In this document: positions 3,866 through 18,530 of the stretch, piece by piece
Layout of the letters: each line of letters starts with the position of its first letter
Position numbering within the stretch: position 1 is the first letter of the stretch
Assembly: GCF_006345805.1 (NCBI RefSeq)
Contig: NW_021835613.1
Coordinates: 1 to 26,239 of the forward strand
Direction of reading: 5' to 3'
Source of the DNA: Octopus sinensis
Taxonomy: Eukaryota
Length of the DNA: 26,239 nt
The notes under the pieces: model-generated
The model's database searches: none
The model's input: the letters and a program-made list of their open reading frames with translations, nothing else
Told to the model about the DNA's origin: nothing
Position numbers and translations under genes: made by a program

Positions 3866-4446
3866 ATATTAAAATTAATATTAATTTATCTCCCTCATTA
3901 TTTAAATATTGAAATAAATACGTTCTCTAGTAGCAAGCACTAACCGCAGTGAATTATTTACTGCAGCCCTTCGCTTCAGGAATTTCTTAGCGCGCCGGAA
4001 CCAAGACATTTGAAATTTTATCCCTAATGTAATCGGTAAAACTAAGCACGTGTCTGTCTTGGCATAGAAAGCTGGGGTTAGTTTTTCAGACTGCATTTAT
4101 GCTGAACGAATGCACTGATGAAGCCACGGACATTTGAATCATGTAAGTAATTCTTTTGTTAAAGGCCGAAACCGAGGTATGCATTTAATTCTGTTTTTTA
4201 TATAAATTTTTCATCTGTCCTGCCCGCCAAAATTGGTTCTGGTGTTCGCTGAATTTTTCCTCTAGAGAATTTCCTTGTAGTTTGATCGTTTGATGATCTA
4301 TTTCGCATTTGGCCAACTACCTGCAGTCTGGCCCTGCCAATATACACATATAATAGAATTTCTCTGACTTCTCAGATTTTTTGTATGCTGGACTACTGGT
4401 TTTAAATTGATATTAAAATTAATATTAATTTATCTCCCTCATTATT
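3866..4446 (+). mobile_element. Hammerhead element E1 (Penelope pLTR/retrozyme-like): 544-nt unit plus 37-nt terminal direct repeat, embedded in (TA)n
   Basis: An identical 37-mer, atattaaaattaatattaatttatctccctcattatt, lies at 3866-3902 and 4410-4446. There is an internal HHR motif, and TA arrays flank both sides. Confidence 0.8.
4108..4186 (+). ncRNA. Type I hammerhead ribozyme motif (near-canonical; A10.1-C11.1 mismatch)
   Basis: Stem I aatgca(4109-14)/tgcatt(4180-85); CTGATGA 4115-21; stem II GCC/GGC; GAAA 4168-71; stem III ACC-ga-GGT; predicted cleavage GUA after 4179. Confidence 0.75.
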
Positions 4447-4554
4447 ATATATATATATTATATATATATATATATATATATATATATATATATATATATA
4501 ATATATATATATATATATACATATGTGTGGGTATGTGTGTGTGTGTTTACGTGC

Positions 4555-4746
4555 GTGTGTTTGTGTGCCTGTGTTTATCCCCAACATCGCTTGACAACCG
4601 ATGTTTACGTCCCGTAACCTAGCGGTTCTGCAAACCGATAAAATAAGTACTAGGCTCCCTGGGGTCGATTTGCTCGACTAACGACAGTGCTCCAGCATGG
4701 CCACAGTCACATGACTGAAACAAATGAAAGAATAAAAGAATAAAGT
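4555..4746 (+). mobile_element. 3' half of octopod SINE
   Basis: caacatcgcttgacaaccgatg...ctggggtcgatttgctcgactaa...gctccagcatggccacagtc...gaaagaataaaagaataaag; the homologous segment is reverse-complemented at about 6535-6665. Confidence 0.7.
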
Positions 4747-5067
4747 TAACTATGAACACACACACATATATACACACACAAACATTTTGCTGCTCTATGT
4801 GTTTATTTATTGAGCTATTTATCCTATATGCGTGTGTTTGTGTGTGTGTGTATAAATATATTTATATGTATATATGTATGTGCGTATACGCGTGTGTGTA
4901 TATAAAATAGAAATCTCCATTAATTACTCCCCACCACAATCATTCCACCTGTTTGATTAATTTCATTCCTTCTCTTCTCTTTTTCTGTGAGTTTTTCTTT
5001 TAATTTTTCACCACCCGACTCCCTTTTCAGACACCATTTTTTATGTTTTTATTCTTTTCTTTATCAG

Positions 5068-5222
5068 TTGAATCCTCGAAATGAATATGGTCAAACACCG
5101 CTGCACTTGGCTTGTTTGTGGGGACACTTACACACACTCGACCTGTTGTTGGGTCACAATGGCATTGATGCCAATGTGGTGGACAACGATGGAGACACAC
5201 CACTGCATTGGGCAGTTCAGGA
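5068..5222 (+). CDS. Visible exon 3, ankyrin repeats ([51 protein letters not shown])
   Basis: Long polypyrimidine tract with tcAG ending at 5067; donor GTaagt at 5223; 155 nt; clear ankyrin consensus. Confidence 0.95.
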
Positions 5223-5794
5223 GTAAGTCCCCATTGGATCTGGAATATCCAAATCTGTTTCTTTTATGTTTTCAATAATGTTTGTTTCTTTTTCATTCAG
5301 TCATTCATGTCATAATCCCACCATGGGGTCATTGTCTTTCTTCTCTCTTTCGCACTGAAATAACACTGTAATCTGCTTCATTAATTAATCATCACCACAA
5401 TTGTTATTGTTGTTGCCTGACTGGACACTTAACTTCATCTCGTTCTCCATTTCCTCAACGTCACAGGTTCAAATCCTCTCTTTTCTTCTTTTCATCCCAT
5501 CTAGAACTATTTTCTCTCTCTCTCTCTCTTTCTTCCTCACTCTCTCTCCTTTGTAGTCTCTCTATTTACTCCGACCCTGGGCTAAATACAGAATCATCCC
5601 CTTATAGTATTTACATTTGTCTCTTTTATGTTCCATGTTCAAATCCTACCAGAATATCTACTATCACTCTGGGGTCAATATAATCTGTACCAGTAATACC
5701 CAGGGGTTCCTTTAATAAGCTGTCTTCCTTCTTTCCTCCTGTTCTTGTTTCTTATTACTTTTAGAGAAAATAAATAGTGTTATTTTATTTACGA

Positions 5795-5900
5795 CTCTTT
5801 ACGTTCAGAGTTCAAATCCTGCCAAGGTCAACTTCTTCCATCTTTGCAAGGCTGATAAAATACAATACCAGTCATGTACTGGGGTTCATATGATTACCTG
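5795..5900 (+). mobile_element. Decayed SINE fragment
   Basis: tttacgttcagagttcaaatcctgccaaggtcaact...taccagtcatgtactgggg, with a B-box-like GTTCAAATCC; a similar decayed piece lies at about 5635-5705. Confidence 0.5.
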
Positions 5901-6195
5901 TAGCCCTTCTTTCCTTCCTAAATTTCATGTTTATATAAGCTGTAAGAATTCTTAGCAGTATTTTCCTGTCTTTACATTTCTGGGTTTACTCAGGTGTGTA
6001 TATATCATTGTCCTACTGTGTAGAGTGTGTATTGAATAAATATATGTGTGTGTGAGTATGTGTGTAATAATTTCTGTAATTAAGTTATTGTGACCTAATT
6101 ACATTTGTTTTCTTTAATGACCTAATAACTATTATCTCAAGCTGTGTGATGTTTGTTTATTTTCATGTTTTTCTTTCCTCATCCATTACTTTCAG

Positions 6196-6232
6196 CGCAA
6201 AGTATAGTGCGGTGTGTCTATTGCTGAACCAG
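6196..6232 (+). CDS. Visible exon 4, 37-nt microexon (DAKYSAVCLLLNQ)
   Basis: Acceptor ttcAG ends at 6195 and donor GTtagt starts at 6233. Phase 2 to 0 bridges exons 3 and 5 and supplies the second helix of the ankyrin repeat. Confidence 0.8.
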
Positions 6233-6534
6233 GTTAGTTAATAAATATATATTATATACACTCTCCAGTATTATATTGATCTGTATAATATAAATATTAT
6301 CAAGGTACCAGTGAAATAATGGGGATAGATTTAATCACATGTACTAAAAAAACCTTGTGTTTGTGGAGGAATTGTATATTGATCATGTTGATGCTGATAT
6401 TAGCGGTGTGGACAGTCCAACTGACCACCACCACTGATAATAATACCTTTAATGGTCAAATGAAACAAGGTCATTATGAGATGAACCAAAATATAATAGA
6501 TATCATGTATATATATATCTATATATATATATAA

Positions 6535-6876
6535 ATGAATTGTTTTAGACATTTGCCTGCGGCCATGCTGAGGCATCATCGAATTTTTAGTCAAATGTAT
6601 CGATCCCAGTACTTTTTTATTTTAAGCATATCACTTACACTCTCAGCCTCTTTGCTGAACCACTACACACACACATACAAAAACACTCACTCACACACAC
6701 ACACATAGACACACACCTGTTATGAAGCTTCTTTCAGTTTTCATTTACCAAATCCACAAACAAGATTTTGTTCAGCCCTAGGTAAGATTAGAATATACTT
6801 GCCTGAGTTTCCATGCAGAGGGATTCAACGTAGAACCGTGTATGGTTGGAAAAAAAGCTCCTTACACTACAACCAT
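6535..6876 (-). mobile_element. Near full-length octopod SINE, minus strand, with internal (CA)n
   Basis: Reverse complement has the head seen at 2391 and the tail seen at 4555-4746. Confidence 0.7.
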
Positions 6877-17038: not shown

Positions 17039-17126
17039 ATGCAGTACGACCATTTCAAGCGAGTCCATTGACTTGAAAAATGCAATTATTACATCAATTT
17101 AAACGCAGTGCTATCTTCAGGTGCAC
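17039..17126 (-). ncRNA. Hammerhead motif, E3 variant (minus copy)
   Basis: Revcomp reads gtgcac CTGAAGA tAGC..GCTt GAAA TGgtCG TA ctgcat. The first stem I pair is C-C and the base of stem II is U-U. Confidence 0.55.
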
Positions 17127-17220
17127 AAAATAAATAGTATTTTTTAAAAAGTAGGCTTATTAATGTTATATTAAAAAATCATGTTTATGTGTCCATTTAT
17201 TAAAAAACTCCATTTAGTTT

Positions 17221-17308
17221 GTGCAGCTGAAGATATAATTGCATTTAAACTGATGTAATGATTGCTTTGTTCAATTAAATGGAGTCGCTTGAAACGGTCG
17301 TACTGCAT
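17221..17308 (+). ncRNA. Hammerhead motif, E3 variant (degenerate stem II)
   Basis: Stem I tgcag(17222-26)/ctgca(17303-07); CTGAAGA 17227-33; GAAA 17291-94; stem III ACG-gt-CGT; GUA site at 17300-02; stem II base poorly paired. Confidence 0.6.
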
Positions 17309-17340
17309 TACTACTTGTTATCCTGTTGCTTATTTTGATT

Positions 17341-17486
17341 ACAACACACACACACACACATATATTATATATATATATATATAATATATATATACATATA
17401 TATATATATATATTATATATATTATATTATATATATATATATATACATATACATATATATATATATATATATATATATATATGTAT
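17341..17486. repeat. (CA)n/(TA)n microsatellite
   Basis: Direct reading. Confidence 0.95.
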
Positions 17487-17759
17487 CAAAGACATGTATC
17501 ACATTATAGCAGGTTTGAGAAAAAAGCGAGTTTCATTGGGAAAGTAATCCTCAAAGGCGTATATGACATTGCGAGACTCCAAAACAAATCGTTCATACCG
17601 TTTTTTCACTCGATAAAGAATCAGTGAAAAAACGGTAAGGACGATTTGTTTTGGAGTTTCGCAATGCCATATACGCCTGTGAGGATTTACTTTCCAAATG
17701 AAACTCGGTTTTTTCTCAAACTTTTTCTCAAGCCTGCTATAATGTGATACATGTCTTTG
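17487..17759. repeat. Fold-back palindrome (MITE-like), about 125-bp arms, 12-nt loop
   Basis: 17487-17610 is an imperfect reverse complement of 17623-17759; loop cgataaagaatc; a short ttttctcaa duplication in the right arm. No TSD recognised. Confidence 0.85.
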
Positions 17760-18049
17760 GTGTGGTAATTGTACGTGGCTGAAGAAGGCTTTTGATCTAC
17801 CTGTTATATCAATTATGCATGATATAAGTTGTTCAATAAAGCCCGAAACATATGTACCGCAAAATCCTTTGCGTCCTGTTTTTCTTTTGATACATATATC
17901 CTATCACCTATACCCCTAGCTGGCATATACAGGTGCTTACATTTATCAAGTATTCACCCTGATTTATATATATATATATATATATATATATATATATATA
18001 TATATATATATATATATAAAAAAAGGTAAAGAAACATTCGGTCATGAAT

Positions 18050-18349
18050 GATTGTCGGATAGCACCCAGGATGTTAGATGTTACTCTCCGGGGCACGAGC
18101 CCGGGTAATTTTTTTATGGAAGACCAACAGTGGCCTATGTATGCCACACTCCATTCTCCACGCCACCAATGTCATCTAAGAGAAAGACAAGGGCCGATAC
18201 AGCTTGACACCAGTGGCATTAGAACTCACTTCTAAAGCCTATTGAACTGGAAAAACATGGAAATATTGTGTCTTGCTCAAGCACAAAATCGAACTCCCTA
18301 CCTCATGAGTGTGAGCCTGAGGTTCTAACCACTGAGCCTTGCATCTTCA
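18050..18349 (-). mobile_element. tRNA-derived SINE, minus strand
   Basis: Revcomp begins gaagatgcaAGGCTCAGTGGttagaacc..gggaGTTCGATT (Pol III A/B-box-like), then tgtgcttgagcaagacac. The 3' limit is approximate. Confidence 0.65.
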
Positions 18350-18361
18350 TATATATATATA

Positions 18362-18530
18362 TAATCAAATTAAGCAACAGGATATCAAGTCGTGATACAA
18401 TACGACCGTTTCAAGCGCCTCCATTCAATTGAACAATGCAATCAATACATCAATTTAAATGCAGTGCCATCTTTAGCTGTAGAAATAAATGAATAGAATT
18501 TTAACCATTCGGACACATTACTGTAATGTT
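18362..18530 (-). mobile_element. Third E3 fragment with a mutated hammerhead core (18396-18481)
   Basis: Direct-orientation homologue of 17007-17135. Revcomp reads tacag CTAAAGA tggc..gctt GAAA CGgtCG TA ttgta; G5 is A. Confidence 0.7.

Follow-up and report, generated by a model that had tools for sequence, protein, structure and literature searches.

We analysed the whole of unplaced Octopus sinensis contig NW_021835613.1 (26,239 nt, hereafter the window), which carries a gene of the ankyrin-RING (Ank-RING) family and at least six separate insertions, in eight pieces, of one superfamily of short non-coding retroelements. Three traits define the superfamily: a type I hammerhead ribozyme, a common AT-rich 3′ end and insertion into (TA)n microsatellites. 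We interpret its four main variants in the window, E1–E4, as non-autonomous, hammerhead-bearing retroelements of the Penelope-like element (PLE) type, with a probability of about 0.8. An original prediction, made from the sequence alone, had already proposed a non-coding, non-autonomous and PLE-mobilised family, and that proposal is supported by open reading frames (ORFs) of at most 64 aa, by empty sites in a paralogous locus and by PLE-like insertion architecture.

Hammerhead motifs and their compensatory changes

Motifs were sought with an RNAmotif-style descriptor for type I hammerheads, which called for a stem I no shorter than 4 bp, CUGANGA, a helix II no shorter than 3 bp (basal mismatch allowed, loop not exceeding 70 nt), GAAA, a helix III of 4–10 nt and UH; 200 dinucleotide-preserving shuffles of the window served as the chance control. 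Four intact type I hammerheads were recovered, compared with a mean of 0.01 per shuffle:

4108–4186 (+): E1 hammerhead, GAATGCA CUGAUGA A-GCC[38 nt]GGC-C GAAA CCGAGG UA UGCAUUU, with A.C at 10.1/11.1 and a predicted cut after 4179 (descriptor)
15886–15965 (−): E2m hammerhead, fully canonical, predicted cut after 15893 in the minus-strand reading (strict descriptor)
16384–16463 (+): E2p hammerhead, GUUUUGG CUGAUGA GCUG[39 nt]CAGC GAAA CAAUUG UC CCAAAAU, predicted cut after 16456 (strict descriptor)
17775–17860 (+): E4 hammerhead, GUGG CUGAAGA A-GGCUUU[45 nt]AAAGCC-C GAAA CAUAUG UA CCGC, predicted cut after 17856 (descriptor)

The original prediction had announced three variants with six or more motifs. 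Sequence inspection located all six where it had placed them, and its predicted cleavage sites, after 4179 and after 16456, agree with the descriptor output, but its list was incomplete, a seventh motif that represents a fourth variant, E4, having been overlooked. The conserved core (C3 U4 G5 A6 N7 G8 A9, G12 A13 A14, A15.1-U16.1, H17) is complete in E1, both E2 copies, E4 and the E3 copies termed E3p and E3m, and incomplete only in E3c, where G5 is replaced by A. No E3 copy is free of defects, and each has one: in E3p helix II is broken, in E3m the first pair of stem I is mismatched, and E3c has the G5 substitution. A covariance model (R1) trained on a set containing E1 scored E1 itself at 37.0 bits, E3m at 43.4 bits and E4 at 41.6 bits.

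Since MAFFT alignments of whole units and of full ribozymes misaligned the cores, covariation was assessed on 47-nt constructs comprising stem I, the core, two 7-nt helix II ends, GAAA, helix III, the cleavage dinucleotide and the other side of stem I. Thirteen copies from six variants (E1–E4 and two further variants, E5 and E6, from other octopus loci) gave a gapless alignment of 47 columns, in which standard pairs occupy 79.3% of cells versus 58.0% in shuffles and both sides have changed in 14 of the 16 helix pairs. The covariation score was 0.666, compared with 0.220 for shuffled alignments (0/500 reached the observed value) and at most 0.165 for slid-partner controls, for a set of which part was picked by a descriptor that demands pairing. 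Helices I–III are maintained via compensatory changes, helix I being open-ended, as had been claimed from the pairing of divergent stems.

The variants were also said to be homologous, which holds for E1 and E2 over ~440 nt (local alignment z-score 9.6, 0/300 shuffles), whereas E3 shows no significant whole-unit similarity to either (z = 1.3–1.6) and is tied to them through the helix II inserts, which are homologous on their own (E1–E3p z = 3.9, E1–E2 z = 3.5, E2–E3p z = 2.8). The helix II insert (38–49 nt) is the best-conserved primary sequence between E1, E2 and E3. E1 and E2 further share four blocks at the predicted distances from the ribozyme core, namely GCGCGC (−125/−125), CATTTGAAAT (−108/−107), TGTAATYGG (−87/−86) and CACGTGT (−68/−69), which may represent an internal promoter or a protein-binding site:

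3990–4053 (+): the four shared blocks GCGCGC, CATTTGAAAT, TGTAATCGG and CACGTGT in E1, with E2 counterparts at 16266–16328, at fixed distance to the ribozyme core

A related 3′ end motif closes all variants (E1 TTATCTCCCTCATTATT, E2 CTATCACCCTTATTAATT, E4 TATTCACCCTGATTTAT, E3m TATTCACCTTACTTCGAT) and conforms to the AT-rich superfamily pattern ATTAAA...ATC.CCCT.ATTA. The distances given earlier for ATTAAA after the core of the three variants (+297, +303 and +299) are exact, but the +299 tail ascribed to E3 probably lies in a separate piece, E7.

Helix II of E2 forms a long hairpin (z = −4.3), and helix II varies among superfamily copies, with a 9-nt loop at one extreme and inserts exceeding 45 nt at the other, its apex evidently being a site of sequence gain. 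Two E2 ribozymes cofold at −46.0 kcal/mol, versus −41.0 kcal/mol as two monomers, through an 8-bp intermolecular ACAAUUGU duplex, which fits the dimer mechanism described for hammerheads with a short helix III (PMC4209133).

Several smaller resemblances were noted in these units. The helix II apex resembles the 5′ splice-site consensus in both E1 (4130–4145, CAT followed by GTAAGTAAT; in RNA, CAU followed by GUAAGUAAU) and E2 (16413–16425, GAT followed by GTGAGTAAT; in RNA, GAU followed by GUGAGUAAU), and ~85 nt downstream of its cleavage site E1 carries a pyrimidine tract that closes with TAG, TTTTTCCTCTAG. PLEs are known for intron retention (PMC8557442, PMC4209133). In addition, the 13-mer AGACTGCATTTAT stands immediately 5′ of the E1 hammerhead (4089–4101) and again at the very head of E2 (16220–16232), which are non-equivalent unit positions, and may mark a rearrangement or be due to chance.

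Element inventory and empty sites in a paralogous locus

The insertions were delimited by self-BLAST, inverted-repeat analysis and Tandem Repeats Finder (TRF), and compared with 259 kb of other octopus DNA obtained via paralogous proteins (loci L001–L006). One of these, L001 from an O. sinensis chromosome, matches the window collinearly at 84–95% identity. The pieces and the arrays that adjoin them are as follows:

3837–3869: 5′-flanking (TA)n array of E1 (TRF), unbroken in L001 at 13377–13430
3866–3902 (+): E1 upstream ‘tail’ of 37 nt, duplicating the unit 3′ end (100% identical to 4410–4446 by self-BLAST) and giving a 1.07-unit partial tandem
3903–4446 (+): E1 unit, 544 nt, non-coding, homologous to E2, missing from L001
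4446–4524: 3′-flanking (TA)n array of E1 (TRF)
15434–15615: (TA)n/(CA)n array at the E2m 3′ end (TRF)
15612–16139 (−): E2m, full E2 unit of 528 nt, its head being the palindrome AATTATAATT (inverted repeat I1)
16140–16209 (+): 70-nt copy of the E2 3′ end between both heads, a partial-tandem junction like a pseudo-long terminal repeat (16139–16216 is the reverse complement of 15612–15689, 100% identical)
16210–16631 (+): E2p, first 422 nt of the E2 unit, meeting (TA)n at the internal TATATTAT and lacking the last ~106 nt (sequence, inverted repeat, self-BLAST)
16609–16795: (TA)n array between E2p and E7 (TRF)
16785–16987 (−): E7, without a hammerhead, ending in the common AT-rich tail (75%-identical, (TA)n-flanked copy at L005 7117–7306)
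16988–17173 (−): E3m, ~186 nt, hammerhead 17038–17127 with the first stem I pair mismatched (inverted repeat, self-BLAST)
17175–17341 (+): E3p, head-to-head partner of E3m, hammerhead 17220–17308 with the helix II base broken (inverted repeat I5)
17360–17486: (TA)n array after E3p (TRF)
17760–17962 (+): E4, the fourth variant, ~200 nt (descriptor, model R1)
17965–18018: (TA)n array at the E4 3′ end (TRF)
18359–18545 (−): E3c, third E3 copy, hammerhead 18394–18483 with core CUAAAGA (G5 → A), ending in (TA)n 18350–18366

Inverted repeat I1 pairs 15718–16139 with 16210–16631 (422 nt, 98% complementary), and I5 pairs 17009–17172 with 17175–17338 (164 nt, 80% complementary, 2 nt apart). A read-through transcript over E2 (15718–16631) would form a 422-bp hairpin, 98% paired, which would hide the ribozyme and present the machinery of RNA editing or RNA interference with a natural substrate. 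A MITE-like foldback (that is, resembling a miniature inverted-repeat transposable element) of ~273 nt at 17487–17759 lies directly 5′ of E4, with outer arms 97% and inner arms 88% complementary; its L001 copy is at ~23110–23385.

The comparison with L001 separates the insertions by age. E1 is absent there: position 3881 of the window joins L001 13430 and position 4450 joins 13377, with (TA)n continuous across the site. The E2 pair is likewise absent, window 15534 joining L001 22566 and window 16988 joining 22647 in unbroken (TA)n, and E2 is young because its arms are 98% identical and both of its ribozymes are intact. E3m/E3p, the foldback, E4 and E3c are all present in L001 at 94–99% identity. 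The E3m copy (L001 22647–22833; 94.7–95.7% identical) retains an intact stem I and has changed G8 to A, the E4 copy (95% identical) has changed G12 to A, and the E3c copies in L001 and L002 are 99.5% and 94.7% identical, respectively. The insertions of E3 and E4 are older than the gene duplication and are decaying neutrally, with different core mutations in each paralogue. The paralogous E3 copies are defective at other points than the window copies and the E3 consensus passes the descriptor, which indicates that the ancestral E3 passes as well.

Unit lengths of 520–545 nt had been predicted, which E1 and E2 bear out and which E3 and E4 (~190–200 nt) do not. E3p and E3c stop ~170–187 nt into the unit, and E3m has an E4-like tail ending at 16988, the exact point at which the window and L001 diverge. 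Because E7 is absent from L001 and stands alone between (TA)n arrays in L005, it is most likely separate from E3, leaving an E3 unit of ~186 nt; with its weak similarity to E2 (z = 2.2), E7 is probably a neighbouring insertion of a 5′-truncated relative. Where the window has E7, L001 has another 66-nt piece (22581–22646) with a tail like that of O. vulgaris E5 (z = 3.7), and each paralogue seems to have taken an independent hit in the same (TA)n array.

Related elements were also found beyond the two paralogues. In O. vulgaris L003, E5 (1114–1204) has a long helix II, an inverted partner 266 nt upstream (296–634) and an end in (TA)n, and a compact E6 pair lies at 39435/40671. A covariance model built from the 47-column set detected further E6-type copies in O. 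sinensis L004, one with a 24-nt loop 2 and one with a long palindromic insert.

Insertion architecture, mobilisation and alternative explanations

The units have no coding capacity of their own, with no reading frame longer than 64 aa and no ORF combining reverse transcriptase (RT) and GIY-YIG domains; the 64-aa ORF of E2, which is spurious, retrieved no homologue as a protein query. ARAGORN found no tRNA-like head, and no small-RNA family matches the unit heads. No unit-length tandem arrays were detected in the window by TRF or self-BLAST, only 1.07–1.13 units per locus. Having one ribozyme per strand in each copy, the window copies would not release a unit RNA; they are solo copies (‘solo retrozymes’ in the vocabulary of hammerhead retroelements).

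Their architecture is the published signature of PLE insertion. E1 and E2 form partial tandems with upstream tails of 37 and 70 nt, E2 (422 nt, 98%) and E3 (164 nt, 80%) occur as head-to-head inverted copies, as do E5 and E6 in L003, and (TA)n arrays adjoin nearly all outer element ends (TRF), the exception being the E3c head at 18545, which borders ordinary sequence. PLE insertions are characterised by partial tandems that act as pseudo-long terminal repeats, an adjacent inverted copy, a tail of 30–40 bp and (TA)n targets (PMC8557442), and PLE hammerheads by paired motifs on opposite strands 100–700 bp apart (PMC4209133). The PLE enzyme cuts both strands of AT-rich DNA, and internal initiation of reverse transcription makes the tail (PMC11167929).

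(TA)n-targeting PLEs exist in the O. sinensis genome. Of two copies in L002 (5800–10700 and 21600–24960), both of which end in (TA)n, copy A (6706–9317, −) gives weak RVT_1 and GIY-YIG matches and has an inverted, 5′-truncated partner as well as an end at (TA)n. Copy B (21602 to ~24950) matches RVT_1 above threshold, reads by eye as a CSRPRCRTC linker, then NIIY...LYIGQTGRRL across a frameshift, and ends in CTTCCCGTTAT followed directly by (TA)n. It has more than 2,400 relatives, one of which, 56% identical, carries RT together with GIY-YIG at the C-terminus above threshold. A hammerhead-like CTGTTGA-A-GAGC..GCTC-GAAA-CG-TT also lies in copy B, ~105 nt from its end; this stretch and the GIY-YIG-like one have no Rfam or Pfam match and are known by sequence reading only. 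The search proposed for autonomous PLEs with RT and GIY-YIG has thus yielded two PLE copies in L002, which share no significant sequence with the units and do not point to a partner of E1–E4.

We propose that master copies elsewhere in the genome, probably tandem, would be transcribed. The 6-nt helix III is palindromic or nearly so (CAAUUG, CAUAUG, CGGUCG, CCGAGG) and would be too weak alone, such that cutting would occur only between paired copies or with the help of a protein and would yield unit-length RNA. RT and GIY-YIG endonuclease, presumably of a PLE acting in trans, would then nick both strands of AT-rich DNA, and cDNA synthesis would begin at the conserved 3′ region. The expected products are units with a short upstream tail (E1, E2), head-to-head copies (E2, E3) and copies truncated at the junction of (TA)n with a TA-rich stretch inside the unit (E2p, and probably also E3p and E3c).

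Several observations weigh against this interpretation. The absences in L001 could in principle reflect deletion between flanking (TA)n arrays instead of insertion in the window, although neither E1 nor E2 has a BLAST match in the remaining loci, L002–L006. Across all 259 kb of additional octopus DNA no further copy of E1 or E2 was found, scans of JGI metagenome contigs for the E2 and for the E6 hammerhead pattern returned nothing, and the status of E1 and E2 as a ‘family’ rests on their mutual homology. The 3′ ends of PLE copies A and B have no significant similarity to the units. In the only PLE tested in vitro, ribozyme mutants had no effect on insertion (PMC11167929), which makes the role of the ribozyme in mobility uncertain. 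The classical G10.1-C11.1 pair is present in E2 only, E1 and E4 having A.C and E3 U.U at this position; U.U at the base of helix II is found in axolotl HHR_Amex2, which still cleaves (PMC7229834). Finally, Rfam reported no hammerhead anywhere in the window, whether at gathering score or with E relaxed to 10, its output consisting solely of microsatellite ‘miRNA’ noise.

The Rfam negative weighs little because the control, a canonical and compact O. vulgaris hammerhead of 46 nt from the same superfamily (CCAC CUGAUGA AUGUC..GACAU GAAA CAAUUG UA GUGG), also went undetected. When the search was restricted to a 171-nt region, where the filters relax, Hammerhead_HH9 (RF02275) matched E2 with 27.8 bits (gathering score 52, E = 2.5e-5), the alignment covering the full model, with loop 2 enlarged by a 36-nt insert and helix III shortened; it is this insert in helix II that keeps E2 below threshold. 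The best match for the small E1 region was Hammerhead_3 (17 bits, E = 0.25), and the small E4 region had none. The cmsearch with Rfam models suggested alongside the prediction therefore gave nothing at gathering score and one sub-threshold match, HH9 on E2. Searches for PLE hammerheads in the literature have used descriptors for the same reason (PMC8557442, PMC4209133).

Among the alternatives, copying as SINE-like elements (short interspersed nuclear elements) by the RT of a LINE (long interspersed nuclear element) or another non-PLE RT, with the hammerhead merely trimming the transcript, is quite unlikely, even though unclassified SINE families are very numerous in octopus genomes (PMC13282606), Cervera and de la Peña 2020 (PMC7229834) left LINEs open as possible mobilisers and LINE RT fragments lie inside the window. 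The units lack both a tRNA-like head and a poly(A) or simple LINE-type tail, and the combination of tail, inverted copy and (TA)n is described as PLE-specific (PMC8557442, PMC11167929). The long inverted repeats of E2 and E3 in TA-rich surroundings, together with the genuine MITE-like foldback at 17487–17759, would suit DNA transposons of the foldback or MITE type with TA as their target and hammerhead-like motifs as incidental passengers. That origin is very unlikely: E1 occurs as one direct copy whose termini carry a 37-nt direct duplication but no inverted repeat, in E2 the spacer repeats the unit 3′ end in one direction and so renders the structure asymmetric, copies differ in length and at the 5′ end but keep a conserved 3′ end, and the ribozyme helices covary across variants, which is unexpected for a passenger motif.

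It is highly improbable that the host has kept the elements as intronic regulators of the Ank-RING pre-mRNA, for although E1, E2p, E3p and E4 are sense to the gene, E1 and E2 are missing from the paralogue, core nucleotides of E3 and E4 have been lost independently in each paralogue, and the elements lie outside the window’s own gene model, in which the exon-1 homologue has a stop codon. Chance matches in AT-rich sequence, for which only the lack of an Rfam match at gathering score could speak, are refuted by the shuffle control and the covariation, next to the homologous helix II inserts and the blindness of Rfam to a compact canonical hammerhead.

Relation to known elements and genomic context

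The E1–E4 hammerheads resemble those of PLEs (PMC4209133) in their type I topology, short helix I (4–7 bp) and enlarged helix II with an irregular base, in a tiny palindromic helix III that implies action as dimers, and in opposite-strand pairs 100–700 bp apart within partial-tandem and inverted insertions. Unlike PLEs, the octopus units have no RT/endonuclease reading frame, their helix II insert of 38–49 nt is conserved in sequence between variants, and helix II is irregular at its base through a mismatch (A.C or U.U) in place of a bulged base. The (TA)n targets, the 30–40-bp tail and the inverted copy beside an upstream partial tandem recall Neptune/Naiad-type PLEs (Craig et al. 2021, PMC8557442), and the L002 PLE copies have the CxxC linker before GIY-YIG that has been proposed to guide (TA)n targeting (PMC8557442). 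In contrast to Neptune and Naiad the octopus units are non-autonomous, and the likeness is one of insertion pattern.

With metazoan non-LTR retrozymes (PMC7229834; bioRxiv 10.64898/2026.07.22.740005) the units share a short, AT-rich, non-coding sequence and a type I hammerhead. For these retrozymes PLE mobilisation has been proposed and ‘solo’ monomer copies have been described (Cervera and de la Peña 2020, PMC7229834; Li, Clavereau and Pollet 2026, bioRxiv 10.64898/2026.07.22.740005). Retrozymes form tandems of at least two units, whereas the window loci comprise only 1.07–1.13 units, so that no unit RNA or circle would result; moreover, E1 and E2 (528–544 nt) exceed the 170–400 nt reported for retrozymes, and the octopus units, unlike retrozymes, have defined 3′ ends beside (TA)n. 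The genus Octopus is not named in the retrozyme literature searched. Compared with Rfam Hammerhead_HH9, E2 aligns over the whole model and at all core positions but has 1–2 pairs in helix III instead of 3 and a 36-nt insertion in loop 2.

Short non-coding repeats encoding type I hammerheads that act best as dimers include the SINE-like Sm-alpha elements of Schistosoma and newt satellite 2, which differ from the octopus elements in sequence, host and genomic arrangement; we know of no report of (TA)n targeting for either.

The octopus elements add a further case to a kind known from other animals, and they leave the picture of the mechanism unchanged. No description of hammerheads in Octopus repeats was found in the literature searched, and the genus thus joins the animals with hammerhead-bearing, PLE-type non-autonomous retroelements. 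The locus is unusually clear in that old and young insertions are adjacent and a paralogue provides empty sites. Two traits of helix II are mildly unusual: its insert, which is long and conserved in sequence, and the A.C or U.U found at its base. For annotation, the lesson is that Rfam covariance models overlook these ribozymes and that descriptor searches are needed. The 2026 repeat annotation of O. vulgaris lists recent PLEs and 893 unclassified SINE families and does not mention ribozymes (PMC13282606); some octopus ‘unclassified SINEs’ may be of this hammerhead class. A bolder proposal, which we consider doubtful and which starts from sequence conservation, is that the helix II insert might be a functional module, a docking site for the PLE protein (in Anolis needed for ribozyme cutting) or for the U1 small nuclear ribonucleoprotein that would switch the ribozyme on or off, and that the (TA)n-seeking hammerhead superfamily might make up a sizeable share of the octopus ‘unclassified SINE’ families. 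If that share were indeed large, PLEs and not LINEs would be a major driver of short-repeat expansion in cephalopods.

The gene in the window belongs to a large, recently expanded ankyrin-RING (MIB2-like) family. Its NCBI model P0002, ‘ankyrin repeat domain-containing protein 35-like’, has coding exons at 5065–5223, 6194–6238, 11170–11412 and 14809–14871, and a fuller paralogue model, P0003, maps to 1280–1462, 5065–5220, 11200–11427 and a RING exon at 20966–21109. The elements had been placed in the introns of this gene, which is correct for the ancestral Ank-RING structure represented by P0003 but not for the NCBI model, as all of them fall outside its coding span (5065–14871). The homologue of the paralogue’s first coding exon (1280–1462) contains an in-frame stop, and the P0002 protein lacks a RING domain although the RING exon at 20966–21109 is intact; this copy of the gene may be decaying.

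Other repeats in the contig are unrelated to the hammerhead elements, namely LINE-type RT fragments and a mariner-like transposase remnant at 8786–10219 (−), 21953–22917 (+) and 20051–20263 (−). A SINE-like repeat containing CCCCAACATCGCTTGACAACCGATG lies beside (CA)n/(TA)n arrays in the window (4575–4720), in L003 (1420–1600) and in L002 (25010–25150), and is probably one of the abundant octopus SINEs. Lastly, a long ATG/ATC-type trinucleotide microsatellite at 794–1271 gives rise to 151-aa poly-Met/poly-Ile ORFs on both strands.

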